Shown here: positions 3,001-64,000 of the stretch, piece by piece
How the letters are laid out: each line of letters opens with the position of its first letter
How positions within the stretch are numbered: position 1 is the stretch's first letter
NCBI GenBank assembly: GCA_965637545.1
Contig: OZ281498.1
Coordinates: 10,168,001-10,232,000, forward strand
Source of the DNA: Phallusia mammillata
Taxonomy: Eukaryota
Direction of reading: 5' to 3'
DNA length: 64,000 bases
Position numbers and translations under genes: made by a program
Notes under the pieces: model-generated
Told to the model about the DNA's origin: nothing
The model's database searches: none
What the model saw: only the letters and a program-made list of their open reading frames with translations

Positions 3001-3474
3001 CACTTCTACATCCTGTTGAGCATCCAATTGTATTCAAACTGGTTACAGTATAATGATGCCTTTTGTTCAGGTTTTTAGGTCAGAAAATTACCGTGATAAT
3101 AAAGTTATTTTCGTAGGTAAAAACTTATCCGTAAAAAGGAAAAGCATACCTAGCACATTGTCGAAAAGCAAAACAAAAAACCTTGGAAATTGTGACAAAT
3201 GCACGACTAATATGGAACGTGTGAGGCTACTTATTCCAAATAAAGTCGCTTAGCAATTATAACCCAAATTATAATTTTATAGCAAGGATTGCTTAAAGTG
3301 TAACCAGATTCCAATTATTCAGCACATTTACAAGTTTAAAGTGTTTAAGACTTATTAGATTTGGTATTTTCCAGTGAAGCAGTTTGGGTGGTTATAAACG
3401 GAAAGAGGTCTGAAGGAAATGTCTATCATGCACTACCAGAATAAAAAATTTCAAACCAACACCTAAATTTATAC

Positions 3475-27320: not shown

Positions 27321-30300
27321 CTATTTGCGATGGTCGTTCTGAGCCTTGTTTTCGTCCAGAACAGAAATAATAAACCGCCTTTCAGGCATGTTAGCCTGAA
27401 TCGACGAACGGTGGTACTGAATTCGGGAACCCCCCTGAACAACGTGGTTTCTCTCGTATTGGACAAGGACTCGCTCAGGCATTGGAGAGCGTTTTACAGC
27501 ATAAAGACGAGGAACATCAAATGACTTAGACCGTTCAGCACGGGCAGAGGCTCTTTTCGGCATCAAACCGTGAGGCATAGTTTCAGCCCTTGCTCTTCTT
27601 GGTGAGTGTGTGTGTTGATGGGTTGAACTTATTGTACCAGATTTCAGATGCTTCGGTTTAGGCTTGATTGGTGGCTTAGGCTTTTTCGGAGATGGAGAAC
27701 CGGAAGATGCAGACTCTTCAGATGTCCGGCTCCAAGTACGTAGGCGCCCAAAGAGGCCTTTTTTGGGTGAGATATTTTCTAGTGATTTTGGGCTTGACTT
27801 CGTCGGTGATGGCTTTGGATCAAACACTGAGTTTACATTTATTTGTTTCATCGCGTTTGAGTTGGTTGTAAGGTCGAGACTTTTCGAAGGAGAGTTGTTA
27901 TCTTTGGTTTGTATGATTGACTGACTGTTAGTAATTCCCGAAGTTATCAAGTCGGCAGAATTTCGACTTGGTGCACTGACTTGCCTTATGGAAGCCCTTG
28001 CATCGTCGGTTTTGGTAAATCCACGTGGACTGAATAATCTCACATCGGACTTTCTTCTATCTGTGGAAATCGAGCCACTGTGAGTGTGTGTAATTTTGTT
28101 CACGTAATTCCCATTGCCAGACGACGCTAAATTTGCTGACCCAGCAGAGGACAATTTTGCTAAACCAGTAGACGACAAGTTTGCTGAACCAGTAGACGAC
28201 AAATTAGCTGTTTCAGAAGATAAACCTGAGTTGTTTGTCTCCTTCCTTGCAGCATTACCAAACTCATTCCCAGAATTTCTGTTTTCACTTTTGTTCTGTA
28301 CATAAGAGGTAGAGCTTTGTTCGTTTTCGGATGATGTTTGTATTTTTCCACCTTCTCTTTTCGTCTCTATAAAAGATTCCTTTGAATTTTGCAGCAGATC
28401 TTTAGCAGAACGATAGTGATGTTGTTGATTGGAAAAATCGTTTGATCCTATCAAACTTTCTTGTTGGTCCTTCTTGGACTTTGTTCCAGAAGAGCTTAGT
28501 ACTTTTTGATCATATTCACTGGATTTCTGGTCTCCCAATGTATTCGTGTTACCAAGTTGATTTTCTACCGTGCGCCCACTTAGGTTGTGTTCATGGCTGT
28601 AGCCACCCTGGTTTTCAGATTTGTTGCTGGAGTGGCTATGTACCAAAGTACTTGAAAACCTTCTGCCACTTCCTGCCTGAATACCAAGGTTCTTTCCATT
28701 AGACCCATCATTTCCACTTGAACTACCACCGGCGTGACCCTGAATTGATGTGAAAGGTTCAGAACTTGAAGAGTTTACTGCTTTACCACCCAACAAATTG
28801 TCAGTTCCACTTTCCTGATTAATCAGCAACGGAACATTGTTCTTGCTATTGAACTGCGAACTTTGAGAGCCATGTTGGTGATTGGAATACATTACATTGT
28901 CTCCCAAAAAAGTTTCTTTAGTGCCGATATGATGTGAGCCAAGTGTTTGATTCAAGTTAAGGGTATTGTTTTCACCATGTTTGTTTGTTTTTAGATTTTC
29001 TAAAATGTTTCCATTCTCAAATTGCTGATTTTTCTGCACTCCGGGTGACTGGGATTGTAATTGTTGTTGTATCTGTCTATCTCGGTCTGTGTGCATTTTC
29101 TGTTCAGTGACTTTTCCCTTCAGTTGATCTTCTACTGAATTGAGTTTGGACTGAGAGCTTGTGTCATAAGTATTTGCAGAATTATTTTCTGCAATCTGGT
29201 TGTACGTTTTCGAATGTGTATGGGGCATTTGGTTTCCTGTAATACTTTGTGCCATGTTACTACTGACATACAAAGGTTGTGCACGAGGCCAATTTTGCTG
29301 ATTAGCCCCTGATAATTCTTGACACTGAGAAGGAAAGTTCGTAAGATCAAGATTGTTGTCGAACTGGTATGCTGTTGTGGTGCCTGACTGTCTGAATCCA
29401 ACAGCTTCTTGCACCTCAGAATTGTTTTGAAAACTTTCCTGACTCATCTGCAATGGAACATTGTTCTTGCTATTGGAGTGCAAACTTGGAGAGTCATGTT
29501 GTTGATTAGAATACATCCTATTTTCTGCAGAATAACTTTCTTCGTTGTCGATATAATGTAAGCCAAGTTTTTCCTCCGAGCCGAGGTTATTGTTGACACC
29601 ATGACCGGTAGTTATTACAACATTTTCAAACATATTTTCGTTTCCAAATTGCTGAATGTTCTGTGCTTTGGATGACTGGGATTGTACTTTTTGTTGCACC
29701 GTTTTATCCTTATGTGTGTCCATTTGCTGTTCACTGAGTTTTGCTGTTGGTCGATCTTTTACTGAATAGATTTTGGACTGAGGGTTTGTGCCATAAGCAT
29801 TTGCAGCATTGCTGTCTGCAATCTGGTTGTACGTCTTCGAATGTGTGTGGAGCATTTTAGTTCCTGCAAGCATTTTGTTTCCTGCAATACTTTGTGCCAT
29901 GTTACTGCCTTCGTACAATGGTTGTGCATTAGGCAAATTTTGCTGATTATCCCCTGTTAATTCTTGAGACTGAGAAGGAAAGTTGGTAAGATCAAGGTTG
30001 TTATCGGACGGGTATGCTGTTGTGCTGCCTGCCTGTTCGAATCCAACAGCTTGTTGTACCTCAGCATTGTTTTGAAAACTTTCCTGACTTATCTGCACTG
30101 GAACATTATTCTTGCCATTGAATTGCAAACTTGGAGAGCTATGTTGGTGATTGGAATACTTCACATTGTCTCCCGTTAAGTTTTCTTTGTTGTCGATGTG
30201 ATGTGAGCCAAGAGTTTGATTCAAGTTCAGGGTATTGTTTTCACCATGTCTACTTGTTTTCACATTTTCTATGTTTCTATTTCCAAATTGATGAATTTTC

Positions 30301-32296: not shown

Positions 32297-35200
32297 CTGC
32301 GAAAGAAGTGCATACGCTGCAATGGCATCGATGTTATGTATAAGATCGACTTTACATCAACATGTTTGGCAAATGGCTGGTGTGGGCGCAAGCAGTTGAT
32401 CGCACAGGCACGGTAGGGAATAAAAACTAACCTTGTGGTCTGAGTAAGGCAGAAATCAGTCTAAAAACTCTTTTGCAGCTTCGCGTTTGTATCTATATTG
32501 TGATTGTTACACATTTTTAATACTTGTTTATCGCCTGGCCACCTACTGCTTGCGCCCGCAGCCCACAAAATGGTTTAGTCGGAAAGTAAGGTACCAACTA
32601 CACTACTTTAATTTGTTGTGTTTTAACTTGGGTTGTAATTTAGGTTTGTACCTTCTAAATCCTCGCGGGATCTTTCGATTTCCAGAGCAAACTTTTTGGA
32701 GCTGGCGCGCAAGCGAGCTTTGCGGCGTCTTAAAGTTCAAAACATTCATTGTGATTCAATTTAGTTGAAACATTACTGTGTGCTATAACACTTTATAACA
32801 TAGTAATTAAACTAGTGCTTAAGTCTAATGAGGAGAATAACGGCCTAAGTACATGTAAAAAGTGCAATACCTGAAACGTTTTAACAATACAGCATGTCCT
32901 TTTTACGTCTACTTGGGCCGTTATTTTATTGATTAAAACTATAAACAGATCAGTGTATAGTATCATGAATTGAAGTGCTTTTGTATAACCACACTCTTTA
33001 CGATGAACCTTCTTGAAGTTATTGGTTACTTACTTGTGGCATGTGTAGATGAGGATTGCAGTGACGATTATAAGCGCAATGAGGGCGAGGATAAAGGCAA
33101 TCATAAATGGAGAAAGAATTTCGCAAGCTGAAAAGAAAATTATTTAGGTTCACCCTACAAACCACAAAGTTTTGTTACGCTTACCACGAAACATAACAGA
33201 AAGTGTACATTTAGAGTAGGATAACTAAGAATGAACAATCGTTTTCAAGAAACAAAAAATAAACTGATGCCATTTTGGTAAAACATATATTCCAATTATT
33301 ATTATTGACTAAATTCTATGTTTGAAAAGTTTAACATGTTATTTTTTTCCAAAAATGAGAGATAATCAATGACTATGATGCCTGAAGAAGGGTGTGATGC
33401 TGTTCCGTTTAAACATTATCAGCACTATAGGATATAGTTTTAACATAGTATTTATGCTTACAATGCGGAGACACGTTTCCGGTGCTCTTGTCTGGAGATC
33501 CAGCGTCTGCTCCCCCTGGTGGTTTGCCGATTGAAGGTTTAATGACTACAATGGCATCAGGGTCATCTTTACTCATACCAATCACAACAGGAGGAATAAA
33601 AACAGGATAAACGCCATCTGAAATACCCGCCAAATTTACTAAAAGTTGTGAAAATATATAACACAGCACATGTTTAGGTAAAATGCTAAGTTTGCAAAGT
33701 GTTCGTAGCACAGTTAAGAGTTAGTCTTGTGTTTCAATAAAACAGGAATGTACAGCTGTTTCTGGATTGGTAATTATTTTGGTGCAATTGTGTCGCTATG
33801 TTTTTTTTCACCTAGCGAAATATACTCAACTCAACATTTATAAACTAGATTTGTACGAGTTTGACCGAAATTCGGTCCTCAATTTCGGATCCACATATAA
33901 CTCATTATAATTTACAGTCACTTTGCTCTTCCGTGTTTTTGTGCTTTGTGTTTTGTCAACTCTGTAACGAACCTTTGTGTCGTTTTAAGGTGTGTAGTTG
34001 GCCGACAGCTTTGTAATCATTGTTGATGACAGCTTGAAAGAATCCGAGATCCTCTCCAGATTCGTCTACCGGCACCACCTGATGAAGGGACACGGTTTTC
34101 ATCTTGGAATCGCCGTAGATTCCCTTGGTAAAGTTCCTAAAACCAAATTCTATCCCGAATTTAATGACATTTTTTAATAACCTGCGGCCCGCAAACGATG
34201 ACTGCAGCAATTACAACCGATGCATATAGTTTGCACACTCCTGCTTTTGGATGCGGGTTTTACAATAAAATTATGAACTATATAGTTTTTGATTAATCTT
34301 TACTAATGTACAAAAAGTATCACAAGTTTAAATACTTTTTGTAAAGAAACACAATAATTGTTTAATTTTTATCAGACTCCATTCAGAGAACAACATAGCA
34401 TAATTAGTTGCAGTCATTGCAAGGTACTTAACAAAGATTACTATTAAAGACAAATATTAGCAGCATATTAAATCTCATACAATACTCTTTTGTAATTCCT
34501 GAACTTGTCTGACACCACTCACCAAAGTGCAGGTCCGAGCTGGGCTTTGACCAGAAACGCGTCGTGAACACAAACATAGCGATGTATATTCGCATCTGCT
34601 TGTTTCGAATGGTCAAACACGTCCACAATTTGACCTAAACCTTTGTGCTGAGGTGGGCATCTGAAGTTCTTTATCGCATATTTTATTCTGCTTCCTGATG
34701 TGTTGACTGTTGTAAACATTACGATGTTTTCCATAGCAAGGGCTTCCAGCAGAGCTGGTCCCTCAATATTCCTGTAAAAATGTGACGTTTTGTGAATGCT
34801 TATGTATGGCTTATTTGGCTTTTATATATGTTTAATTCATACTAACGTTCGGAGATGCAATTAATATCATAAAAATGTTTGTATAATAACTATGCATTGA
34901 TACATTTATCAATACTAAATAACGACTTCGGAACAACAATGAAAGAACACTTTTACACACATCCCAAATTTGTGAAAGGCTGATTTTAAGTACGGTATTA
35001 ACAAATTAGGTGATGAAAACGTTTGAAAGACCTTAACAGGCAATCTTCTATAGGGTTTTCTAAGACTTAAATAATATTAGACATTGCAGATTAGTAAGCA
35101 TTATATCGTTATCTAAAGCTAGTTAAGACTTAGCCCAGAGGTACTGAAGAATAAATAGGCAACTGAGATGGGTGGAATACGCAATACAAAAAGGAAATTT

Positions 35201-38200
35201 GGCAATATAATTTTCTTAATCGTTTAAGATATTTTGTTTCACAATAGTAACTACTTTTAACTCGCAATCGGGGTTTTCTATGAGTCGGCGTTTTGAAACC
35301 AACAAGCTGTTGATGGAACGATATTGTAAAAAACAAACATTTGTGTTAGATTATTCAACGACGTACCTGCCCAAACGAACACCATGCGTTCTGTTTTGTA
35401 AGTTGGATTTTAGTTGCTGCCCGAAAACTTTCCAATCCCCGTGGATTTCGGGTTCTTGAATAGTCAGCCAATCAGTACGATTGCTGTTCCAAGCCCTGTA
35501 CGTTTGTTCTGGAAACAAATGCAAAGATTTTATTTCCTGTTTTGTTTCAATGTTTCACACAGTTGTGTTCGTTTTTAGCATTAAATTGTCCCCATATGCA
35601 TTTATTTGATTGTTTTTATCTTTATTTATGCCTGAAGTTTCATGAGTGACTAATTTTGAACTTGTTTCAAGTGGTGACTTCCATAACCTTGGTTTCAGGG
35701 TACAGTTGGTGTACATTTGAATTTGCATTGGTCTTTACTATAAATGTGCATCTATGTCAACTAGATGACTATGTTTATTATTAATTTTTTTATTCTATTC
35801 GTATGAGACAATATTTAATATAACTTACATAAGTTACGCAAGATAAGATATCTTTGGTAAGATAAGCCTTCGTTGCTTGTGTCGAGATAAATATATTGTG
35901 AAGACAATAGTTAGGATAATCACTTTATCTTATGTAATGTCAAACTCTTCACTATTCACCCATGAGGCATAAAACTGTACCCTTGGGCATAAATTTGTCC
36001 CTGTTCAAAAACACGGAATGTATGTACGTATACCTTGAGTAAGAATGACCGGTAAATCGTCAGTCCCATTTTGCTTGAAAGAAAGTTCCAAACTATTTTG
36101 AAAACTAAGTTTAGCTTCAAACCGCAGACCCTCGCTTGATACAGTCTTCTTCCATCTCCCAGTAACATCTAGAACAACAAATAGGTTCAAATATGTCCAT
36201 CAGGTGCCGTTAGAAGTCTACACAAGCCAATATGGCCTACGTCTTGTCAGCAGCTGCACTGGTGGGACATTATTGGTCGAAATAGCGTGCACTGTATCCA
36301 GCTTACTTAACATTTATTGACTTGATGTTTCTATATGTGCATCAGGTATTGTAACATAAAATACCGTTCGTGGGTATTTAAGTGGGTCTGAATATTCCTT
36401 AGTAACGCACATCGTACAAACACAATGAACTTAAAAATGCAACAACAGCAAGAAGTTTGGCCCTAAATTTTACATGTTTTTAAACCATGTAAAGTTTACC
36501 TGCAAAGTCAGGCTTAAGTTCATACACTTGTCTGTCGGGTTTACTGAAGTTTGTGTTCACCACGAAGTAGTTGCTCCTTCGGACATTCAAAGGGTCAATA
36601 GATTCTATCGACCACACACTGATGTTACCAAGTTCGGAATCCTCTTGCTTTGACCTGTTCAATATGGAAAACACTTGAAACATAATGGATAGTTGACAAA
36701 CAAAAGCAATTTAACAAAATTTTGCAATAGTCTAGTAGGTCTTCTGTTTGTCGTGTTCGAGATTGCAAATTTCCTGTAAACTACATATTTTAAATATGTG
36801 ATTTCTTGAAACACTGGACAAGAGGATTTAAACAGTGTAACAATTTCACTTATTTAGATTTTTAAACGGTGGGGGGGGGGGGAGTTGTACAATTGCAAAA
36901 CTTTAATTTATTAAGACTATTTACTTTAGTGAAAATGCATCAATGACAGGTTTATTTATATTGTCCGGATTAAAAATTAAGACTTAGGGATCGATGGTGC
37001 TAAACCATTTGCGTTTACGTCGGAACAAACGCTGCACTTATGTAATATATAGTGCTTAATAGTGATCAATTAGGTCTCTGTTTGTCAGTCTGTGTGTGTT
37101 CACAGCGAATGTAGGCTATGGGAAATGGTAACGAGTATTATTTCCGCTGGTTGATCTGCGTCAAAGATTAATGTATCCTGGTTGTCATCGTATTGGGTGG
37201 TGGTTCTCATTTGTCGTCCATGGACTACATCTAAATATAACTCCATGTACATGTTGCATGGATACAAGAAGTAACGCTCTATAGCGCATGGGCACTGCCT
37301 CCCATAATCTGCAGTTCACCAAACACGTATTCCTTTCCCATATTAACCACTGTGCTTAACCATACGTGAAAACACTCTGCCATCCAAAAACAGATTTTAG
37401 CGGCTTTATGCCATCCATGACGTCGCCTATATGCATAACGTCAATATATCAATCGATTATAAAAAAGTTTTTCCCAAAACATCTATTCATTTTGTGTGCA
37501 ATTTGTACATTTCGATGCGTGCCAAATATTTGACCTACTTTGAGGGTAAACATTTTGGTGAGGCGATTTTGTTTAAGTTTGATAATTTGCGTGTCACAAA
37601 ACATCAAGTTAAACTTGTCAAGAGTTAAACCAGAGGAAAACATTAAGAGCTAAAAGGTAACAGATTACCCTTCCTATGGAGAGTAGGTTGAAACAGATTG
37701 AAACTTTTCGAGCAAGTTAAATAGATGGTATTGACCTACCATAGCATTGGGCCAATCGTTGCCTTTTGCACCAGACCTTTATGAATGCATTTGTATTTTC
37801 CAGATGGTGGGCTTTGACCTGGACTTGATACGTCCCCCAGCGACCGATAATCCACGGGACAGCTAGTTTTAATAAAATTAATATTTTACAAACTACAAAA
37901 TTTATAACATATTCATAACATTGTCAATAAAAAGTTTAACCGGGGAAGTAAGCCTATACATTATGTTTGAATAAGATTTTTAATTCTATGTACAACTCAA
38001 AATGCAGACATTGCACACTGATCTACAGTGCCGTAAGGTGGCTATATTAGCTCATACGGCCAATATTTTGTTACCAGCTGCGCCGACGAGAATTCCGAGG
38101 TCGCAGCAGTGTGTATTGTCTGCATTTCGATTTTTACATAATTCTATTTAACTGTTAATTCTATTTAAATAAGATAGTGACGCAGTTGCTATAATATATA

Positions 38201-53200: not shown

Positions 53201-56200
53201 TCTGGTTGTCACAACTGGTGTGTTGGTCGTCGGCGCTGTGGTTTGCTTCGTTGTTGCAACTGGTGTGCTGGTTGTCGGTGTTGTCGTTTTTCTGGTTGTT
53301 ACAACTGGTGTGCTGGTCGTAGGCGTAGTAGTTTGCTGCGTTGTTGCAATTGGTGTGCTGGTTGTCGGTGTCGTTGTTTTTATGGTTGTTACAACTGGTG
53401 TGCTGGTCGTCGGTGTCGTCGTTTTTCTGGTTGTTGAAATCGGTGTGCTGGTCGTAGGCGCTGTGGTTTGCTTCGTGGTTGAAACTGGTGTGCTGGTTGT
53501 CGGCGTCGTCGGTGTGGTCGTTTTTCTGGTTGTGGCAACTGACGAAATGGTGCTTGGCACGGTCGTACGTTTGGTCGTTGCCATTGTTGCATCTGCTACA
53601 ACAGCCGGAAGTATAATATCTGGTGCAGAAAACACTGCGGTTTGCCCACCACCTAAAACAAAAATCATATTCCATCACTATAAATATGTGGTCCAAAAAT
53701 AGTTTCCAATGAATAATTAATCTGTGTGAGATTAACCTTTGACTTGAAGCTAAATATAGGGTTTATACCTAACCGAACATTATAAATTTTTCATACATAC
53801 ATCATACCAGTAAATTGGTTAGTTGCAACAAAGTTTCCAGATTTTCTTAAGGCATAAACTTGTCTTGTATTTGCTGCTCCTTTATGATGAGCCGCAAAGA
53901 ATGCAGCTGATTCTCCTTCTGGAGAGTTTGCTACTATCTCTTTCACTTGAAGCTGATTATTTGGAGAAGAAGAGATATCCGGCAGTGATCTTTAAAGAGG
54001 GGTGGGTTAAACTTGTGTTAGGACTCAGAACAGGGCTGACCCAGAACATGGCTGTTCAACGTAGACACGTCTGGGCATTTTGTGCAATTAAATGCGCGGC
54101 ATACCTTTAGTTAAACAATTTATGTGGTGGGTGAAAACCGTTTTTTGCAGGTGTATATACGCTGTGCTGCAAAAAATGGAGAATTCAAACCTTTGCCTCT
54201 AGGATTTCGCTTCTATTTTAAATGTATGTTGCTGGGGTAAACATTAATTCGGTATAACGCCTTTAATGGGACTGGCGTACTGCGGTGTTGCTAGGTGTTA
54301 TGTTAATTCTCTGTTGCTTTAAACCATTGCAATGTTATTATTTAAACCAACATAACAAGTAACTATTTTTGTTGCAACTTAATCAGTTTTTCGTAGGTTA
54401 TGTAACGCAATAATAAATATTAACAGTCTATTTGCAAGGTTGAAAACTAGAGCTGTGTCGATTTTAGAATAATGATTTGTTACTGGTTACTAGCCAGCAA
54501 ATTGCTTACTAATTACAAAAAAACATTAAATGTCTTTTAGGGGTTTCATTGGTTACATATCATACTAGTCACAACGAAATATAAAAACTTCATTTGATCA
54601 ACTTAACTAAAATCGAAATTGACCCGGGAGTAAACAATATTGGTAAGCCTTATGTTAAACTCCAATAATGAACTTACAAGATGGTTGTGTTGAGAAAACG
54701 CCCGCCAGTTGTAAAAACTCGGTGGACGCACGAAAACTGAGAATGATCAAGCTCTGCACCCTCGTCGTCGTATTTGGCTACATCAGACAAAGCCACATAC
54801 GAATGTGGGCAATCCAATTTGTAGAATGTGAGATTTGACTTGTGGCCAGTGTGTTCATCGTGGTGATTTTTACTTACGCTCACTGAACCAATTCTCGTAG
54901 AACCAACAGCGGACATCGTCCCCTGGCCGTATACATTTCTGTACAACATTTTTTAATAGCACCAGAAAATGTAAAAGAACTATGTAAACGTGCCTTTACC
55001 CTTAGTAGGAGGGCTTAATACGGCGTTGGTGCAAACGAATACTTTTGGTACAAACGATTTTCCAAAGGAACGTTATTGAGCTTGAAGGTAAATAGACAAT
55101 ATATCGGGAAAAATAAAACGCACAAATTGACTTGACAAATGTAAATTGAGTGGTAATTTTAAGCATTTTTTGGTTAAGATTGAGCAAACATTTCATTTAC
55201 CAGGTTGCATATTGAGTTGATGAAACTCAACATGCAAGACAAAACATTTAGCAAACATTTAGTACAAAGCAAAAATTGGCCCTGTTGTTGAACCAGCTTC
55301 ATTTATATATTTTATTTCATGTGTCAAAAATAGCTCTAGCAAAGTCTAGCCCCGATTTTCCCTATAACACATAACCAGAAAAGTTGATGAAACTCAACAT
55401 GCAAGATAAAGCATTTAGCAAACAGTTATACAAAGCACAAATGGTCCTATTGTTGAACCAGCTTCATTTATACATGTCATTACTTGTGTCAAAATAGCTC
55501 TAGGAAGGTCTAGTCCCGATTTTAAGTTTAACACATAATCAGTATACCTAATCTCCAAGAATTTCCAGTCAAAGTTTTGGCTTCCTGTAAACATTTCCCC
55601 CAAACCCTTCCAACCATCTGGGAGCAGAACTGGTTTCCACAAGTCGGATTTGGTGTCATTGATCAAGGCGTGAATAATCTCAATGTTACTGCGCTGAGGT
55701 GTATGTTTTCGAGTTTCAACCATCATGGAAGGGCCTTGTGTGTATAGGTAGCTATTTCCGTTCACTGAAATTACGGTTTGAAAATGAAAAGTCGGTTCAC
55801 TGAAATTACGGTTTTGAAAGTAACTTAAATAAAAAACTTTTACACTTTTTAGTGTTTTTAATTGTATATTGCGTCATCGAAATCGTTTCTGAGATGTTGT
55901 TATTTTCAGTAATTCACCAGCAATGGCCTTGCATGAACTTGCACTTAGTTAGTTCAGTTATAGTTGCTGCACAGTTAAAATTAAGTTAGTCTAAGTGTTG
56001 CCATGTCAACTACTGTATGTACGTCTTCTGTTTATTATTATTTTATTTAGAAAGAGCAGAAATAACAGTTTACGGAAAGGACAAATATTGCTCATTTTAA
56101 TCACTGTCAAACACAAACCAAAGATGTATTTAAGCGAAAAGCTACGTCAAATAGTTTAAAAGTTGCATTTAGTGTAGCCTATGTAACTTTATCTAACCGT

Positions 56201-59200
56201 TTTTTGTTTCGGGTAGGACGTAAAGCTTGCTTCGACTGCCAGTGTCTTGTACAGCAACAAAGTTCAAGTCAAAGTTTGTTCCATTGTCTGCTGTAAGTGT
56301 TCGAAGATCTACATTTGCCGATATTTTCCTGCAAAAACATAGATTCTTATAGAACAGATAAAGCAGGACATTTTTTAACAAAAAAATATCAATTCGTATG
56401 TAACTCATAATAAGCATGCTGCAGACAGTACACACTGTTTTGGCATGTAAGTAGCTGTTCAGGCTAATATAACCACATTACGTCCCTTTAGTTTGTTGGG
56501 AGTAACAGGCCCCAAAAAGCCATGCCCCACCAATTCTGTTCTGCTACTGGGCATAGAGGAACAGTGTGCACTGTATGCAGCTTATTTGGCAATGCTTTCA
56601 TGTAATAAACAAATAACAAGTTTAAATATCAGCAGCATCAAAACAGTTTTGTAGTTCATTTCAAGATTGATCCAGAAACAAGACATTACCAAAGAAAGAG
56701 TTCACAAGAAATATAAAAAAACGTTTACCTTAAAGTTGGACCGTAATCGGCCATAACAAGAAACTCATTACTAATGCATCGAATTTTAGCAGTATCTGGT
56801 GGATTGAGCTCTGACGTTGTGAGCGGTCCAATTGTTGAAAAACCGTTTGGGCAAATGACTTTCCACATATGTCCAAAGTTAAATTTATGCGGGGGGCTTG
56901 GTACTATTTCGGTAACATCCAATGGTGGAACGAGAACGGTGGGGTCAGTGGTGCTTAAAATAAACACATTCTTACGTAAGGACCACACAAAGCATAAACA
57001 AAATAGGATGCAAAGCAAATGTCGGTAGAAAGAAACGTCCGTGCATGTGTTTTAAATAGCAATCGTGTCTACCAAAATAGCTGATGAAAACCTAATTAAA
57101 GTAAAGTATAGTTTGCAGTAAAATCAAGCCCCACAGTAGCAGTTTTTAGGTGATAGCTGTTCTCTACATCAACGCAATGTTAAAAAGTGGCGCATAAAAC
57201 CTAGGCCAGGCAGAATCAACAAGCAGCCTGTGCACAATATTTGCACAGGATATATATTTCAGTGTTTTTCGGCATCTTCAGCTCCTGTTTCCAATAGAAA
57301 CTGAAGCAATGAATACGTTTCAGCATATTGTGCATGTTAGATTGAAGCGGTGCAAACAAGTCACTTTTATATTGTTTTTGTGTGCCTTCTTATATTCGTT
57401 TTGGTGCCTTACAAATACCTTAAAATACCCTCACCGTATAGGTTTAAAGTAGTTAAGGAAATGTTCTTGTTAAGCTTTATGAAGGAGACAAATAAAACAC
57501 CATTTACCGTGCAAAAAGCGGCAACACATCGTCTTGATTTGATCTGTTTGAACCGGCCACTCCGACCATATAATAACCGTTAATATGATCTGCATCATAT
57601 GCACGGAATGACTGCGGAGAACTGCTGGAGTTTGCGAAAAGTGACAGACGACCATCAAATTTTCCAAGTCGAATTTCGAGTTTGTTTCGATTTTCGTACA
57701 CAAGAAGATCTATAGTCAACGGTACATTGATAATTTCATATTTCAAGAATGTCAATCAAATTTATTTTATCTGGTAAAATCGGGCACAAAATACACAGAT
57801 AACGCATATATAAGACTAGTTTTTATTTACCAGTATATTTTAAACTTCTATAATGCAACTGTTGCCAAACATATTTCACCTTTCAATGATTTGCAAGTAG
57901 AAAACCCAGTTATTCCACTGGATTTTAGATCCATTGGCATTCCAGATCTTGTCAGCCTTGCTGAAGAAACTGTCATGCAGTGCGTAGAGTTGACAGACCA
58001 AAGTGCGCACGTAGCAACGTTTTCTTTGCACGATTGAGAACAAGATCCCTCTGAAGTGAATTCTATTCACAAACAGATACGATTTTAATTTGTTTTAAGT
58101 TGCTCCAAAAAGGGGGATTGACATTTCTTACCTGTAGCCACAATTCCTGCATAATTGGAAGGTGAAATAAATAAAGGAAGAAACGAGCAGTTTGCCTGAT
58201 TGGCGGCAACTTCTGTAAAACATAAAACAATAACAATAATAGTTTATGACGGCTATAATTCGCATAATGAACACAGGGTCTAAATTACCCTGTAAAGATC
58301 AAGTGTTTATTTTAACTTTACCTTTCCGAAATAAATAGTACGTTGTCTGCGAGTAAGATAAAATATTTAAAGAGTACAATAAGTGGATTGCCTTCTACAA
58401 GGCTTGAATGCTTGTTTATCCACATTGTTGAGGTAAAAAAAAACAGTAATTTGAAAGTCAAACTATTAGGGAGTTTCTTGATCAATAAACAATTCCAGTA
58501 CGAGTAATTAGTTTATACTCAAGTAACAGTAGACCACCAAAAAAGTTAATTGCTATTTGTTATTTACCAGATGATGAAATGTCTCGCTGGTTGATGTAGG
58601 TGAAAGCCCCGTCCACCGATCGCAATTTCACGTCACTAAGTAGTGTGTCACGTGATGTATGATAGCAAATCGATTGTTTTTTGTCTGTATAGTTGGGGAT
58701 GAAACTAGCAGCAACACAAGACCCGAAGCAGGTGTCCTATGAAACAAAACATTAAAGCCACACTTTAATAAGATTTTTCTTGAACGTATTCATAGATTGC
58801 CAGACCGGTCTCACAAGCTTTTTTTACCAGGCAAGGCACAGGCTAGAAAAATCGAACCTGCGGTAAGATTTGAACCAACGACAGGAGTCTGTACGAGGCT
58901 CTGCGTTTTATTATCAATCTGACCTACTACAGTATAACTCTTTTAAGACAATGCATCAGGCTAGAAAGATCAGGGCCAGAGAGGGACTCAAACCAACGAC
59001 AGAAACACATCAGGGGCTCTACACAGTATCAACTGGGCTTTCGGGCTGGCGCTCTTACCTTGCCTAATAAGAATGCTCGGAATACAACATAACTTTTATC
59101 AGTGGTTTACACACCCGCTTTAAAGCTATAGGCCTACCCAATAGTGTTTAAACCTACCCTGCATTCAAGTAGATCCGTTGTTTTGGGAACTTGTTGACCA

Positions 59201-62200
59201 ACCAAAAGATTGTTTCTAATCATTTGTTTGAAGGAGCCTTGCAACACTACAAATCAATGACAATAATGTGGCTGTTATTGTATTTAAATAATAAGACACA
59301 TACCTTCTGCCAGCAACGGTATCTCACGTACAATTGTAGTGCCTAAAATACTGGCTGGGTATACTACAGCGGATTGACATGTGTAGGATAAATCTGAAAA
59401 ATTATCTTAAAGTTAGTTTACGTGGTTTAAATGGGCAAGTATTAAGCTAATTGAAAAGGGTACCAGGGCTCTTCTTTAGGACATAAAGGTTTCTTCCAGT
59501 CACATTGTGAGGTTTGGCAGCGATAAAGAAATTCATCTGCTGTCCTTCAGCACAGGAATCTGGTTCTACTCTTATCACATGCAAAGGAGCGCTTTCAGAT
59601 TGATGGTTCCTACATAAAAGCAGTAGGTGAAAAATGGTGTATATTGCAGTAGCTCAAATAGTTGCAAGTAACAGGCGGAAAGGCTATGCCTCGGCCCATT
59701 TGTTGCTATAACTTGACAAGCACTGATGCCACCGTACGTCGAAGCAATGTACGGTACATTGTTCCGGATTAATCGAGGTTCACTGTAGCTGTTTCGCACA
59801 TTTGAAATACCGAATGGTTAAGAGTAAATCCTTCAATCACGCTAATACAGATGCCCAAATTGTACTTACCACACAAGTCCTCCAGCGTGCGCTGGGCTTA
59901 AGTGTTTGCGATTAACACACGCATAGTCGCGCAAATTCGGGGGATTTCTCGTTGTCGTGACAACGTCACCGATGGCATGGTATCCGCTCTTGCACTCCAG
60001 CTTCCAAAAACTCATTTCAACTTTAGCTGATTCATCCGCATCAGCAAAAGCGCTCGCGTTGCCGATTAATTCGGATCGAGTTGGATACGAAAGACCATCG
60101 CCCTGTATGTTTCTGTAAATAAAAAAACAAAATTTTTTAGATTTCTATTTGAATAAGGAACTGATGATGCCATTAGAAAAATATATATTCCGTCACCTGA
60201 AACTAACTGATATTGTTTTCAATAAGAATTTAATTTATCGTCCATTGGTTGCACTGACTTATATTTTTTTCAACATTCTAGTGTAATGCTCAGAAACTAA
60301 TGCTTCAAAGCTAAACGTTGTTCATTAAGATAGATATTTAAAAATTGATACAATTTTTGCTAATTTAAACTAAAACAACCGCGGCACAGGGACTCCGCTT
60401 AAAGAGATATTTGGACACCTGTCTTTTGTTTTAAATAAATATTTGGATTACCAACCATAACAACATTTTTAGCACTTTTTAAGTTAGCGCCAGTAGTTAT
60501 GGCACATCATAAATTTTACATTTCTACTAGCTGCTTACCGAACTTTCGGTACTTCTGCTTCAAAAGCGTTGTCGGCTGATGCCACCTGGCCAATCCTAAA
60601 ATAGCCAGAGTCTTGGAGTTCTACATCGAACACTCTGAACATCTTGATCACTGCAGTTTCATTTGGTTGTCTGTAGAAAGCTTCAATGTTTGGATTCTGA
60701 CTCGTTTCACTGGCAACTTCGATCTCGCTCAAGTCTTGAAGTTTGTAGGAAAATGATCCGTCCCGGTCTGTGAGGTTACATATAAAGCCAGTGAGGTTAC
60801 ATCTTCTGTAGTAGTATTTGCCTGCACGCCATTTTTTTGATTCAAGATTACAAAATGTACACAAGACCAAGTTTTATCGAAAAATTTTTCACGTTAGATG
60901 AAAAATTTCAAACAATGTACAAAATATTTGCGACAAAAAAAACAGCTCAGCCACTAGTGTGGAATTGTACGGAATTACTTTACGATTAACTTACCTGGAA
61001 GAATCTTGGGAAGAGTAAACAAATGCAAGTGGTCGGGGTCTGGTTTTGTAAGATGGTCAACCGCTTTAAAGAAGTTAAAATTCATGTCCGCATGTGGATT
61101 CACTGGTTTTGTGCTCCACACAGATACATCGTGATACCGGCGGCTAGTCTCGGACCTAAAAAAACATGTACACGAACCTTCAAATAAATTCAGTCAGTTA
61201 AAGTTGTTTCCGGTTAAATATCTGGTCAGTTAAAGTTGTTTCCGGTTAAATTTCTGGTCAGTTAAAGTTGTTTCCGGTTAAATTTCTGGTCAGTTAAAGT
61301 TGTTTCCGGTTAAAATTCTGGTCAGTTAAAGTTGTTTCCGGTTAAATTTCTGGTCAGTTAAATATGTAAAAAAAATGCAGCATGGGTATATGTTCTAAAT
61401 TAGCCCGGGTTTAGGTCCATGCCCAAGTTAAATAAAATTAAAATTCACTTTCAGGACTAATTCAGGCCTAGTTAAATAAAATTAATCGGGTTCGGGCTCC
61501 GATTTATTTAGGTACAGAGGTCACTAACTGAGTAGCTTACACTAAATTACCTTTGAGGCAACATGAAACGTTATCATCAAGTATCTAGGATTCAGACAAA
61601 CCTATTGTCATTTTAGACAAGAAATTGCCTCAATGCTAACTAAATTGTGTTTTAGTCGTATAATTGAATGATTACATTCTACAGACTTCATAATATTTCT
61701 AAAAACAAAAGAATAAAATAGAAATCTTTCAAACGTTTTCTGTAATTCAAACTCTGTGTACCACCTTCAAGCTTACTGAGTAACACAAAAATAATAATGA
61801 AAGAGCTAAAATCGTTAGTATCAGAAAACTATAGTAATGGCAACATATCATTTTCTCGTAAAGCTTTCAAACTTGCGTACATTATTTGGGCATCGATTGT
61901 CACAGGCCGGAGGAAATCGTTGTGAACGCATCTGTATCCGTTCGGTTTCGTCTTTGATGTTGTTCCAACGTCTCCAAGAGAGGAGTATCCTATATTTCAA
62001 ATATAAAGCAACGTTTAACCTGTTTTAGCATGTTGTTTTTAATCAGCTTTCAATAGACATGTCGCAATGATTTAAATATATGTGTGTATTGATCGCTGGT
62101 CTACATGAACGCTTCAAGGCTGATTCCACTTATGAATATGCGTTCATCTTTGCTGATCAGACATCATGTGTAGCATACGAGGCAAGCAACGGTGCTTGTA

Positions 62201-63932
62201 ATTCGACTTTCGACAGGATCAGTATTGAGCCTATTTAGCGGTGTTTGTAGCGGGTGAGGTTCGAAATGGCTTCCGTCGTGGGTTTGAATCCAACCGCAGG
62301 TTAGATTTTTTTAGCCTGTGTATTACCATGTGGAAATGCTTGGGACACCGGTTTGACCGGTTAATGACGCCTTCAGGCGGGGTTTTGAGTGAGCTGTAAA
62401 GGTGATTAGACATTGTACCAACCTTTCGGACATTCCATGTGATAAAACTTCAAAGGATTGTTGCCACCTGGTACTTCGTTTCTTGACCATATCTCATGCA
62501 TGCTCGTTGGAAGAGCGAGAGGTTGACCTACCACTGGCCTGCGAATTAAATGTCAAAGTGATTACGTTGTGCCAGCTAGTAATTTACCATAGCAAAGGGG
62601 TTTCTAACCAGAAGTACTCTTTGGGATACAATGCACACGATCAGAAATGCGAGATATAAGGTGAAAATAATGGCTTTTTCCGGCCAATTCGTGAAAAGTT
62701 AGTTTGACTGGCAAAAAATCAATTTATGTCCGGCACACCACACATGCAATAAGAAATATATTGGCGATAATGGACAAAATAAAGTATTTATCGTTCTATG
62801 CGCAATATTACAGATTGTAGACAAAATATCGTGATATTTGCATGATAAAGCAATAAAACAAATGATCACCAAACGCGCTAAAAACATTGCCCTATTTAAT
62901 TGCAGTTCTATCATCACTTAAAGTAAAATACATTAACTTTTTTTTCAATTATTCGCGCTTACTTTGCTAGTACAACCGACAAAAAAGAGACGTTGCTGGA
63001 CGAATTGACAACTCCGATTTGACCAAGTGGAAAGTATCCACTGAGATTAGAAACTTCGGAAGGCACAGAAAGAAATTGATTCCGACCTTCTTGAAATACA
63101 ACAGCGGAAGTCACCGGGACGTCAATCACTTTGACATTCATCTCAAGCCTGGTGTCCGAGGTCTTCAGTAACTCTCCTTTAGGACAAAGCGTGGTTGAGC
63201 TTCTCGTGATTAAATTAAGATTTGTGAAGTTTATGAATATAAACTACATAGTAAACCATTGTACATGAATTTAATATTGGGATCACGCCCAATAAAGGGG
63301 TTGTACCGAATCAGCCGGTTACCGAGCATTTCCAAGCATTTACAAGTGTGCCGTTATCGTTGGTGTGCATAGGAGCTTCAGGGCCAATCCAAGTACATTT
63401 ATGTTCATTTAACTGATTTGTATAAATATAAAACAATTTTGACCAGCGTTTTCCAATCATGGTTCCCCTCAACTTTCACTTTGCGTTTAAGGCAGGGGTT
63501 CCCAACCTGTGGTACGCATACCACTAGTGGTACGCGAAGGTTTTTCAGGTGGTACTCGAGTAGCTTCCGTTTTTTTCACAAACACCTGGATTCACAACTT
63601 TATCATTTATTTATCTGGTTTTGTAGACCAATTGGTGGAGAGGTAAACAAAAATCTCATTAAATTTGGTTGTGGTGCTTTAGTGTTATTTTACGAGGCCA
63701 ATATACGCGTGGCAGCACAGAGCGTCCAAGTGGTACGAGATCGAAATAAGGTTGGCAAGAACAAGTAATATAAGCTGGCAAGAGTGCAAGAGTCTGTAGG
63801 GCGAGCAAAGCTAAACAAAGGCGTTTGTTTACTCAAGATTCTTGAATTTGATTCGTTGACGTTGTATCGGTGATAGAACTAACTCTCCATACGTGAGAAA
63901 GATATAGTATATGTTTTGTGGCGCAGAGGATC
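27321..63932 (-). CDS. Giant multi-exon single-pass membrane receptor-like protein (10x Vps62/DUF946-like, 6x PAN/Apple, WSC, mucin linker, TM, long disordered tail); 5'-incomplete
   Basis: Hand-threaded exons (minus strand, high to low): 63932-63833 (weak acceptor), 63202-62963, 62538-62423, 61989-61881, 61155-60995, 60767-60539, 60112-59870, 59609-59464, 59393-59304, 59237-59158, 58736-58568, 58212-58132, 58050-57880, 57709-57508, 56953-56729, 56328-56198, 55764-55548, 54938-54678, 53989-53808, 53652-53086, 52534-52431, 52073-51923, 51399-51325, 51246-51067, 50538-50331, 50180-50078, 49908-49802, 49625-49528, 49461-49254, 48125-47996, 47914-47790, 47279-47089, 46661-46457, 45827-45567, 44954-44797, 44290-44077, 43702-43499, 43080-42956, 42596-42426, 42239-42136, 41682-41508, 41251-41124, 40597-40462, 40188-40105, 40020-39823, 39536-39429, 38985-38877, 38426-38316, 37862-37740, 36654-36500, 36168-36034, 35508-35367, 34771-34523, 34136-33973, 33617-33462, 33127-33034, 32728-32652, 32296-27321 (stop). 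All phases match with no internal stop; sum 14,162 nt. Many NxS/T sequons before the single TM segment. Confidence 0.88.
28145..28235 (-). repeat. Coding 24-nt repeat, ANLSSTGS-like x4
   Basis: TANLSSTGSANLSSTGLAKLSSAGSANLASSG. Confidence 0.8.
28810..30710 (-). repeat. Coding tandem repeat, ~210-aa unit, about 3 copies
   Basis: Homologous positions at 30417, 29778 and 29151 (periods 639 and 627 nt, both multiples of 3); unit includes HTHSxTYNQI...GENNTLNLNQTLGSHHI...KNNVPxQxSQESFQNN...FPSQSQEL. Confidence 0.9.
31292..31415 (-). repeat. Coding 21-nt repeat, SQTHG(Y/S)Q x6
   Basis: Plus-strand unit CCATGTGTTTGACTCTGA(T/G)AC repeated. Confidence 0.9.
33034..33127 (-). CDS. Transmembrane exon of the giant receptor
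   Basis: SCEILSPFMIAFILALIALIIVTAILIYTCHK, then basic stop-transfer exon 32728-32652 RRKARLRASSKK; consensus TTTTCAG acceptor and GTAAGT donor. Confidence 0.9.
33973..39536 (-). CDS. Vps62/DUF946-like modules 9 and 10 (9 exons)
   Basis: LGQVGQS...YEQIWP...RFWKMN|CPVDYRSLGDVSSPGQSPPSGKYKCIHKG...LWSKQ...ISVWSI...YFVV...VYEL; WKVFGQ...FRCPPQHKGLGQI...YVCVHDAF. Confidence 0.82.
38002..38125. mobile_element. Third, shorter copy of the TA-MITE family
   Basis: ATGCAGACATTGCACACTG ... CAGTGTGTATTGTCTGCAT; a one-ended relative lies at ~36200-36303. Confidence 0.65.
39823..40188 (-). CDS. PAN/Apple domain 6 (2 exons)
   Basis: LCIIGR...Q|GSLSLPECHSTCSAKPLEQCWIWAFNVTECVHI...VGFAKC. Confidence 0.75.
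40462..41251 (-). CDS. WSC domain (2 exons)
   Basis: YLGCYED...MKTGATIDTCLSSCSDAGYPFAGLQ|DRDECRCG...SSCFYRC...QTCGGDSALSVH; canonical WSC cysteine pattern. Confidence 0.92.
41508..42239 (-). CDS. PAN/Apple domain 5 (2 exons)
   Basis: CFSKRDVILRG...DLIKCQ|IYCQMNIDCFAWSFSINNNDDANCYYV...TKSC. Confidence 0.8.
42956..50538 (-). CDS. Vps62/DUF946-like modules 5-8 (14 exons)
   Basis: VWSLICPTGYK|ALGSF...RCVHNSY; FWNLQ|CPAAYHALGDVVL...YVCVHEEF; SMWEPVDPNNEFYVIGH...LWHMNCPEGFVTLGD...RCISKEF; FWQAEPMEGYKIIGQV...FWKIKCPKNYQALSDF...ACVHEDF. Confidence 0.85.
43132..43480. mobile_element. Non-autonomous hAT-type MITE
   Basis: TIRs CAGTGGTTCCCAACC / GGTTGGGAACCACTG; 8-bp TSD TACTAAAC on both sides; subterminal GGGGGGCCAC repeats. 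Confidence 0.92.
45020..45292. mobile_element. Degenerate hAT-type MITE
   Basis: CAGTAGTTCTTAACC ... GGTTGTGGACCGCTG; eroded TSD TAACAGAA / TACCAAAA. Confidence 0.5.
45904..46103. mobile_element. MITE with TA TSD (Tc1/mariner-like), ~25-bp TIR
   Basis: TA|AGCTGCAGATAGTGCACACTGTTT ... AAACAGTGTGTACTGTCTGCAGCT|TA. Confidence 0.8.
48321..49057. mobile_element. Non-autonomous hAT-like element with TAG(A/G)GTTTCT termini
   Basis: TAGAGTTTCT ... AGAAACCCTA; 8-bp TSD CCACAGAC at 48313-48320 and 49058-49065; subterminal TCCCGG(G)A motifs at both ends. Confidence 0.85.
48632..48780 (+). mobile_element. tRNA-derived SINE-like sequence nested in the hAT element
   Basis: A-box-like GACCGAGTGGTTA (48636) and B-box-like GGGTTCTAATCC (48679), followed by TCCCTGGGCAAAAACTT. 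Confidence 0.55.
51067..52534 (-). CDS. Tandem PAN/Apple domains 3 and 4 (4 exons)
   Basis: SRSLEHCR|DSCLIDFTCLSWSREFGSSGNCYHV and CVIP...SNVECRRLCGKSKTCLLWSFSSGQCSQV...GFGVC. Confidence 0.8.
52620..52920 (-). repeat. Dispersed repeat family with an internal B-box (SINE-like), copy 1
   Basis: Minus strand GGCTGATCCCAGTTATGAA...TGCTTGTGATTCAACTTTCG...TGAGCCTAT...GTGGGTTCGAATCCCACCACAGGCTAGATT; aligns to 62095-62385(+). Confidence 0.65.
53086..53652 (-). CDS. Thr-rich mucin-like linker exon with 15-aa tandem repeat
   Basis: PTTSTPV(V/A)TT(RK/KQ)TT(T/A) x7 (45-nt unit); phase 1-1 exon with TTTTAG acceptor and GTAAGA donor. Confidence 0.85.
53808..57709 (-). CDS. Vps62/DUF946-like modules 3 and 4 (6 exons)
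   Basis: NGYYMVGVAG...HMWKVICPNGFSTIGPLTTSELNPPDTAKIRCISNEF; DLWKPVLLPDGWKGLGEM...TFYKLDCPHSYVALSDV...FSCVHRVF. Confidence 0.82.
55216..55540. repeat. Intronic ~167-bp tandem duplication
   Basis: GTTGATGAAACTCAACATGCAAGA...GTTGAACCAGCTTCATTTATA...AACACATAA occurs twice (55216 and 55383). Confidence 0.85.
56418..56582. mobile_element. Second copy of the TA-MITE family
   Basis: GCTGCAGACAGTACACACTGTT ... AACAGTGTGCACTGTATGCAGC. Confidence 0.75.
57880..59393 (-). CDS. Tandem PAN/Apple domains 1 and 2 (5 exons)
   Basis: LLVGQQVPKTTDLLECR|DTCFGSCVAASF...ICYHTS and CSFLP...EGSCSQSCKENVATCALWSVNSTHCMTV...GFSTC: CxxxC...C-x-x-(F/W)-(S/T)...C core of PAN. Confidence 0.75.
59464..60767 (-). CDS. Vps62/DUF946-like module 2 (3 exons)
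   Basis: SGYFRIGQVA...RNIQGDGLSYPT...SFWKLECKSGYHAIGDVVTTTRNPPNLRDYACVNRKHL...MNFFIA...LYVL. Confidence 0.82.
60995..63202 (-). CDS. Vps62/DUF946-like module 1 (4 exons)
   Basis: SGYFPLGQIG...LALPTSMHEIW...KFYHMECPK|GYSSLGDVGTTSKTKPNGYRCVHNDF...VSVWSTKP...FNFFKA; fits W-x-x-x-(C/P)P-x-GY-x-ALGD...P...CV pattern. Confidence 0.8.
61193..61362. repeat. Intronic 32-bp minisatellite, ~5.3 copies
   Basis: Unit GTCAGTTAAAGTTGTTTCCGGTTAAATTTCTG, near-identical copies. Confidence 0.95.
62095..62385 (+). repeat. Same B-box repeat family, copy 2 (fragments also at 58803-58900 and 58955-59015, minus)
   Basis: GGCTGATTCCACTTATGAA...TGCTTGTAATTCGACTTTCG...TGAGCCTAT...GTGGGTTTGAATCCAACCGCAGGTTAGATT. Confidence 0.65.
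63493..63765. mobile_element. Degenerate hAT-type MITE
   Basis: Left end CAGGGGTTCCCAACCTGTGGTACG, internal GTGGTAC repeats, eroded right end AAGGTTGGCAAG; no clear TSD. Confidence 0.5.
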
Positions 63933-64000
63933 CTCAAGAAGTGTATTTTTTAAAGTGTTACGTAAGGGTTAAAAAACGTTGAATTAAAAACGCCATGCCC

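Follow-up and report, generated by a model that had tools for sequence, protein, structure and literature searches.

The sequence analysed here, referred to below as the window, is a 64,000-nucleotide (nt) stretch of the ascidian Phallusia mammillata (positions 10,168,001 to 10,232,000 of contig OZ281498.1, assembly GCA_965637545.1). On its minus strand, our computed exon model places a giant gene that runs from 63202 to 27321 through 52 exons and encodes 4,591 amino acids (aa) with no internal stop. The modules of its product follow one another in the order V1 V2 - P P - V3 V4 - mucin - P P - V5 V6 V7 V8 - (X) P - WSC - P - V9 V10 - stalk - TM - tail, in which V is a beta-tripod module, P a PAN module and TM the transmembrane segment; the WSC domain is one among about eighteen modules. 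An earlier note, made from the sequence alone, had joined 58 exons with matching phases into a single frame of ~4,720 aa. Our own splice and phase model recovered that single thread with the same module order, whereas its counts of exons and residues are lower.

The model took every stop-free minus-strand segment as starting material and chained exons by dynamic programming with codon log-odds, GT-AG scores and phase consistency; it was then retrained on its own output. The resulting introns have a median length of 426 nt and the longest measures 1,128 nt, which leaves no space for an intergenic gap. The transmembrane exon (33034-33127) leaves phase 2 and joins the largest minus-strand open reading frame (ORF; 27321-32282, 1,653 aa) at an acceptor at 32289. 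The earlier note had recognised the same terminal exon but had placed its acceptor at 32296, a site that is out of frame and was ruled out. A modelled exon of 24 nt (41033-41056) is probably spurious, because the two halves of the WSC domain that it separates abut exactly, and the end of the V2 C exon is uncertain in the model.

The ten V modules share one construction. Each consists of three exon types, A, B and C, whose entry phases of 1, 2 and 2 are repeated across modules; the B exon is split in V1, V5, V6 and V9, and every unit is spread over three or four exons. The A exon carries the motif G-Y-x-x-I/L-G, the B exon F-W-K-x-x-C-P-x-G-Y-x-A-L-G-D ... Y-x-C-V-H-x-x-F, and the C exon N-F-F-x-A ... 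L-Y-x-L. All ten modules align over their whole length in about 190 columns. As a control free of circularity, we used a hidden Markov model (HMM) that contained no sequence from the window and was built from 113 beta-tripod units of unrelated library proteins (the outside-only HMM). Searched against the six-frame translation of the whole 64-kb window, it gave 15 matches with expectation values (E) down to 7e-19. Every one of these lay on the minus strand between 34522 and 62552, and together they covered the B exon of 10 out of 10 modules; the plus strand of the window gave no match.

Comparison with known families placed the modules in Pfam Vps62 (PF06101, also DUF946). Three single B exons matched this profile with E of 3e-6, 2.8e-5 and 9.3e-5, two of them above its cutoff of 22.1 bits, the B-exon matches being confined to positions 95-162 of the 541 in the profile. 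An HMM of the whole module aligned with library beta-tripod units over positions 25-190 of 194, with domain E down to 2e-27, and the library proteins that it matched also bear Pfam Vps62. When a profile of the B exons was run against 1.84 billion cluster representatives, 268 proteins matched at E 0.001 or better. None fell below 1e-30, and the product of the gene itself is therefore absent from that collection. The best matches were multi-unit 'Vps62-related' proteins of Chloroflexota, metagenomic proteins, plant and algal VPS13 proteins, and Vps62-aerolysin fusions. A word-index search with the V2 B exon turned up no candidate with words in common, and profiles of the A and C exons found nothing meaningful among PDB sequences. 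Two candidate relatives were discarded: a 3,886-aa hemichordate protein (P0117) of the Sushi/cadherin type, whose C-P-x-G-Y-like motif had produced a chance match, and P0018, a DUF7507 repeat protein.

We next consider the fold. GNIP1Aa is a bacterial insecticidal protein whose C-terminal domain is a beta-tripod (PDB 6FBM). P0001 matched 6FBM with E 1.2e-24, and the B-exon profile from the window matched GNIP1Aa residues 385-449 with E 1.7e-6. An AlphaFold2 (AF2) model of the V2 B exon, computed from a 40-row alignment, had a predicted local distance difference test (pLDDT) value of 91.7. Foldseek matched this model, which covers one leg of the three-leg module, to 6fbm_A alone among PDB structures (probability 1.0, E 2.9e-3, template-modelling score (TM-score) by query 0.56; the next matches had E above 2), and to Vps62/DUF946 entries among AlphaFold DB clusters (TM-score 0.6-0.78). 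By sequence, all ten V modules belong to the beta-tripod family, the fold behind Pfam PF06101. The ten Vps62/DUF946-like modules of the earlier note are in this way borne out, all of them by the outside-only HMM and their link to PF06101 by profile and fold.

The family name calls for correction. Pfam 'Vps62 domains' have been predicted to be beta-tripods (Levine 2022, PMC7613979), and the same paper, citing Zaitseva 2019, gives the name Vps62 as the product of a spurious alignment error. As cited there, Zaitseva 2019 first described the beta-tripod fold in GNIP1Aa and gave it a role in binding; both PMC7613979 and PMC10683392 cite that study for target recognition by beta-tripods in GNIP1Aa. 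The InterPro entry IPR009291 holds about 6,000 sequences, chiefly from plants and fungi (PMC10683392). Among our library relatives, beta-tripods are fused to aerolysin and MACPF pore-forming domains; P0003, P0004 and P0006 join beta-tripod units to aerolysin-type domains, and P0003 also has a trefoil domain. The earlier note had described the family as known mainly from fungi, plants and some bacteria. It had the family right, but the name becomes beta-tripod and chordate members exist: an ESM Atlas cluster of proteins combining Vps62 with aerolysin/ETX_MTX2 is mostly chordate among members with a known phylum, so that the fold is not wholly foreign to chordates.

The remaining ectodomain modules were compared with Pfam and, for PAN, with known folds. 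The WSC domain, which the earlier note had named, passes the Pfam gathering cutoff over two exons. Its first exon (41124-41251) matches positions 1-47 of the 82 in the profile (E 1.7e-6, 28.6 bits against a cutoff of 27.8), and its second (40462-40597) continues exactly at position 48 to the end at 82 (E 3e-4, 21.4 bits). Each PAN module pairs a short exon ('a') with one rich in Cys ('b'); for PAN1 the model leaves the former unplaced. The alignments conserve a C-x3-C ... C ... W-S-F ... C pattern, with three Cys invariant and one Trp nearly invariant across 10 sequences. In Pfam, the 'b' exon of PAN4 reached E 0.021 for PAN_4 and E 0.025 for PAN_3, that of PAN5 reached E 0.069 for PAN_4, and the exons of PAN1 and PAN2 had no match. 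Against PDB sequences the PAN profile met MIC4 at E 0.53 and an Eimeria PAN domain at E 1.7, its top match, a WD-repeat protein, being spurious. Modelled with AF2, the PAN4 'b' exon (about 85% of the domain) reached a pLDDT of 87.4, and 13 of its 15 top PDB fold matches were PAN/apple domains (TM-score by query 0.54-0.63, Foldseek E 0.3-2), namely those of the SML-2 lectin, factor XI and prekallikrein (apple), TgMIC4 apple-5, an Eimeria PAN module and the HGF N domain. The six PAN modules of the earlier note thus find support in the fold modelled for PAN4, whereas their Pfam scores stay below the cutoff.

The mucin-like segment was likewise confirmed: Tandem Repeats Finder detected 6.8 copies of a 45-nt unit (array 53187-53511) that encode a Thr/Pro-rich repeat of 15 aa, for which O-glycosylation is predicted. 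The 'X' element did not survive as a module of its own. Its exon (42136-42596, 153 aa) has no Pfam family and is conserved only at aa 117-153 (59% identity, tblastn against the homologous locus L009 described below); these last 37 aa are the 'a' half of PAN5, which the next exon completes.

The protein has one hydrophobic segment only in its 4,591 aa (Kyte-Doolittle 3.27, at about residue 2912). Before it, the sequence contains 73 Cys (2.5%) and 1.44 N-glycosylation sequons per 100 aa, against 0.97 expected, in keeping with the dense sequons reported earlier; the tail behind it contains 2 Cys (0.12%), and its sequon density of 0.96 per 100 aa lies below the expected 1.78. The N-terminal 2,900 aa would accordingly face outward, because they are Cys-rich, enriched in sequons and mucin-like in part. 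This sole helix is conserved in the homologue and would fit a type I topology for the single-pass receptor proposed in the earlier note. The basic cluster said to follow it is only weakly basic in the window (H-N-A-P-L-L-G-H-E-K-H), but the homologous locus L001 has a clear K-R-C-R there. The membrane-proximal stalk exon gave no significant Pfam family, its sole match (E 0.31) lying far below threshold.

The tail is rich in Ser, Gln, Asn and Gly and poor in Cys. Within it, a unit of about 630 nt, which corresponds to some 210 aa, occurs three times in a row at 28809-30790, and Tandem Repeats Finder detected micro-repeats of 21 nt at 31291-31423 and of 24 nt at 28129-28210. Neither this tail nor that of the homologue has a Pfam family, and a word-index search returned no homologue for it. 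By BLASTP it aligned with the L001 tail over 57 aa near the C-terminus (30% identity, E 1e-6), the rest being unaligned. Its short motifs amount to one ITIM-like string, no ITAM and three PxxP, and look-alikes in the ESM Atlas scored 0.81 or less and serve as leads only. The 'signalling tail' of the earlier note is not upheld by these results: the tail looks disordered and fast-diverging apart from the roughly 57-aa C-terminal block.

Further evidence on the layout of the gene came from homologous loci. These surfaced among the profile matches as small-ORF 'proteins', which were B exons on metagenome contigs carrying host DNA. In a 93-kb ENA contig (L001), PAN6, V9 and V10 come first, next a membrane-helix exon with K-R-C-R behind it, and last an ORF of 1,884 aa. 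Three JGI contigs (L002-L004) gave the same exon matches as L001, with an ORF of 1,890 aa. Of the other loci, L009 covers V7, V8, the conserved end of 'X' and PAN5, and L005 covers V4. Exon identities between the window and these loci range from 30 to 59% at the protein level. The whole window has no nucleotide similarity to any fetched homologous locus; the loci therefore come from another organism, and coding sequence is what is kept. As judged from these exon matches, the layout, including exon structure, membrane helix and giant tail ORF, is conserved in a second organism.

Several observations concern these contigs themselves. On L010 (869-19405), from the other organism, PAN-WSC, PAN, one beta-tripod B exon, PAN and WSC occur in that order; L010 is a paralogue within this mosaic family, comprising one gene or several. 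L012 and L013 were rejected as homologous loci; they are large contigs of other organisms with only single B-like exons. L009:1-3789 and L016:9369-13156 are 99.9% identical over 3.8 kb and then diverge, which marks a repeat or an assembly junction within the homologous locus, and a small ORF used to walk upstream along the homologous contigs toward the 5' end was discarded, as it sits in this repeat. Several gene calls on L001 and L009 (for example L001:2329-3198, P0048) are interrupted by stop codons in both the standard and the bacterial code, or extend across introns; evidently they were made with another genetic code and are not real proteins.

Features of the giant gene. Coordinates are window positions.
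Feature	Position	Strand	Evidence
Whole gene within the window	27321..63202	-	52 modelled exons, about 4,591 aa; gene model, intron statistics, 5' reading
V1 (A, B1, B2, C)	60995..63202	-	Module alignment; outside-only HMM at 62409-62552 and 61832-61996
V2 (A, B, C)	59464..60767	-	B exon Pfam Vps62 E 3e-6; outside-only HMM E 7e-19; AF2 and fold match
PAN1 + PAN2	57880..58736	-	Cys/Trp pattern in alignments
V3	56198..57709	-	B exon Pfam Vps62 E 2.8e-5; outside-only HMM E 1.5e-14
V4	53808..55764	-	Outside-only HMM E 1.5e-9; A and B exons 33% and 47% identity in L005
Mucin-like Pro/Thr/Ser exon, about 7 tandem 15-aa repeats	53086..53652	-	Tandem Repeats Finder, translation
PAN3 + PAN4	51067..52534	-	PAN4 'b': weak Pfam PAN_4/PAN_3, AF2 fold
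V5 (A, B1, B2, C)	49254..50538	-	Module alignment; outside-only HMM at 50072-50206 and 49801-49989
V6 (no A exon found)	47089..48125	-	Module alignment; outside-only HMM E 1.2e-11 at 47789-47914
V7	44797..46661	-	Outside-only HMM on A and B exons; A, B, C 42%, 46%, 40% identity in L009
V8	42950..44290	-	Pfam Vps62 E 9.3e-5; outside-only HMM; conserved in L009
'X' exon + PAN5 ('b' half 41508-41682)	41508..42596	-	tblastn against L009; PAN_4 E 0.069
WSC, two exons	40462..41251	-	Pfam WSC (PF01822) above cutoff
PAN6 ('a' and 'b' exons)	39823..40188	-	Alignment; 'b' 32% identity in L001
V9 (short A, B1, B2, C)	36500..38985	-	Outside-only HMM at 37739-37885 and 36483-36710; exons 47-55% identity in L001
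V10	33973..35508	-	Outside-only HMM; A, B, C 39%, 40%, 51% identity in L001
Stalk exon, Pro/Gly-rich, membrane-proximal	33462..33638	-	Gene model
Transmembrane exon	33034..33127	-	Hydropathy scan; equivalent helix exon in L001 at about 12714-12830
Terminal exon, 4,969 nt (1,655 codons, then stop)	27321..32289	-	ORF translation, composition
Tail tandem units, three	28809..30790	-	Repeat search, Tandem Repeats Finder
Sole tail block shared with the homologous locus (residues 1589-1645 of the tail)	27354..27524	-	BLASTP against L001 tail

The rest of the window contains an intact non-LTR (long terminal repeat) retrotransposon ORF on the plus strand (7560-10637, 1,026 aa) with endonuclease and reverse transcriptase. 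It matches a Phallusia mammillata reverse transcriptase in UniRef with 100% identity along all 1,026 aa, which confirms this ascidian as the source of the window. On the minus strand, an open exon of 1,594 aa (12157-16941) abounds in runs of Arg/Ser and Lys/Ser, as nuclear RS-domain proteins do, and has no Pfam family; it is probably a large exon of the next gene downstream. The idea that it might be a paralogous tail was rejected, as it has no similarity to the tail of the giant gene. A further minus-strand ORF of 483 aa (3392-4843) has no Pfam family, and Rfam gave no match in the window.

We put a probability of roughly 0.7 on the window carrying a single ascidian gene that is lineage-specific and encodes a giant type I membrane glycoprotein, a reading in which single-gene status would follow from the computed model together with the collinear homologues. 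The ectodomain of such a protein may offer a multivalent binding surface, since beta-tripods recognise targets in GNIP1Aa, the PAN/apple domains with the most similar folds bind galactose or proteins, and WSC domains bind carbohydrates. By this analogy, the ligands of the protein would most likely be glycans or glycoproteins, whether these belong to matrix, tunic, other cells or microbes. Pattern recognition, adhesion, gamete recognition and allorecognition, which the earlier note had put forward, would be candidate roles. Its tail would most likely be a flexible cytoplasmic scaffold with a docking block of roughly 57 aa at the C-terminus, and not an enzymatic signalling domain. The architecture is new and every part of it is a known domain. 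The earlier note had not recognised it, and neither the 1.84 billion representatives nor the literature yielded a protein with beta-tripod arrays, PAN and WSC; the literature likewise held no report of an ascidian Vps62.

A number of points weigh against the reading of one giant, glycan-binding membrane protein. The gene model is computational, some of its small exons are uncertain, and frame hints were given by hand at five segments where the first run had chosen the wrong frame or missed a Cys-rich exon. Reading of 63200-64000 in three frames revealed no start codon or signal peptide, the 5' end lying beyond the window. V6 is without an A exon, that is, one leg is absent, and no PAN 'b' exon rose above the threshold of the Pfam PAN families (PF00024, PF14295, PF08277), three of the six having no PAN match. 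The fetched parts of the homologous locus yielded no WSC. The product is absent from the public protein collections searched. The sampled words occurred in none of the RNA runs of the species, only DNA-like runs containing them. RNA-seq junctions, which the earlier note had proposed as a check, did not materialise either: compared with 30500-36400, the contigs of four RNA runs covered no exon and contained no splice joints. Finally, the binding function is argued solely from the roles of the domain families elsewhere. As a separate observation, contigs of the RNA runs match introns at 33767-33833 and 32873-32927 (~90-95%) and then continue into unrelated sequence; these intronic stretches are probably copies of a dispersed, transcribed repeat.

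The absence of transcripts linking the exons bears on the possibility that two or more genes or transcription units share the locus, for example secreted beta-tripod/PAN proteins beside a membrane-anchored gene with a long tail. The thread would then be an artefact of shared phases, and duplicated modules with identical phases (1, 2, 2) would indeed thread across gene borders; moreover, the paralogous L010 has PAN, WSC and one beta-tripod exon arranged in another sequence. We nevertheless consider such a division unlikely. Modelled exons are never more than 1.1 kb apart, the interior of the protein has neither a signal-peptide-like stretch nor a hydrophobic segment besides the membrane helix, and the orders PAN6-V9-V10-TM-tail and V7-V8-PAN5 are kept in the homologous loci. 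Were the gene instead silent or decaying, as a recent pseudogene or an unexpressed relic, the lack of expression in the RNA runs examined and the absence of the protein from the public protein set of the species would be expected, and V6, minus one leg and preceded by a 1.1-kb intron that looks repeat-rich, would fit as well. Decay is, however, very improbable given 52 stop-free exons, an open terminal exon of 4,969 nt and exon-only conservation of 30-59% without nucleotide similarity, which points to long purifying selection.

A single gene may also encode a mainly structural or barrier protein, a membrane mucin or matrix anchor such as an epidermis-tunic tether or a surface coat, and not a receptor that passes on a signal, with the tail as a spacer. 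Such a role would suit the lack of a signalling domain in both tails, the almost complete divergence of the tail and its growth by tandem duplication, and an ectodomain in which a mucin segment is combined with lectin-type modules. The conserved C-terminal block and the retention of an ORF of 1,650 to 1,890 codons in two organisms suggest, in contrast, that the tail is used. We think a mainly structural role improbable; it overlaps with the multivalent binding protein that we prefer and differs from it in emphasis only.

More speculatively, the protein might play, in an animal, the part that cell-wall integrity sensors play in fungi. Located in the epidermis, it would hold on to or monitor the cellulose tunic through its WSC domain, PAN/apple domains and ten beta-tripods, the tail and its C-terminal block would report inward, and the beta-tripod would possibly have come from bacteria. 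Such a transfer is plausible because the best-scoring named relatives are the Chloroflexota 'Vps62-related' proteins and because tunicates acquired cellulose synthase by transfer from bacteria; a cellulose-based tunic is, to our knowledge, found only in tunicates. We regard the whole idea as a long shot.

Ascidians are the closest invertebrate relatives of vertebrates and display allorecognition, self-sterility and a unique cellulose tunic. Discussion of beta-tripods has so far concerned plants, fungi and the pore-forming toxins of bacteria or eukaryotes, in which they are thought to pick the target. Ten of them in a conserved animal surface protein, together with two lectin-type modules, provide a natural system for finding beta-tripod ligands. 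The gene also adds a large unannotated family to ascidian genomes and shows that genes so large are missing from current ascidian gene sets.

Compared with the known beta-tripod family, the V modules share the W-x-x-x-C-P-x-G-Y-x-A-L-G-D and C-V-H motifs and match the first roughly 200 positions of the family profile and, over their whole length, the library units. Known beta-tripod proteins are mostly from plants (including VPS13M), fungi and bacteria, and contain one to three units, which often adjoin MACPF or aerolysin pore-forming domains (PMC10683392). The giant ascidian membrane protein differs in having ten units, all in its ectodomain, and in lacking a pore-forming domain. Its PAN4 'b' exon resembles the PAN/apple lectins and adhesins (Sarcocystis SML-2, Toxoplasma MIC4, Eimeria MIC5, and the domains of factor XI, prekallikrein and HGF N) in predicted fold (TM-score 0.55-0.63), and the Cys pattern fits, with 29% identity for TgMIC4 apple-5; the Foldseek E of 0.3-2 and profiles below Pfam thresholds set the PAN modules apart.

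Fungal Wsc1-3 are proteins of a few hundred aa with an extracellular WSC domain, a Ser/Thr-rich O-glycosylated region, a single helix and a non-enzymatic cytoplasmic tail. The ascidian protein would have each of these parts, its O-glycosylation being predicted. At the sequence level the comparison covers the WSC domain. Wsc1-3 are without beta-tripod and PAN, and here the mucin segment lies far from the membrane and the tail measures about 1,650 aa. Polycystin-1 is a WSC-bearing giant mosaic receptor, and MUC-type proteins are membrane mucins. With these vertebrate proteins the ascidian one has in common a huge mosaic ectodomain, a tandem-repeat Pro/Thr/Ser segment and carbohydrate-binding modules. 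It differs from them in its set of domains, with no SEA, GPS, REJ, PKD or EGF domain seen, in its single pass through the membrane, and in a tail far longer than that of the membrane mucins.

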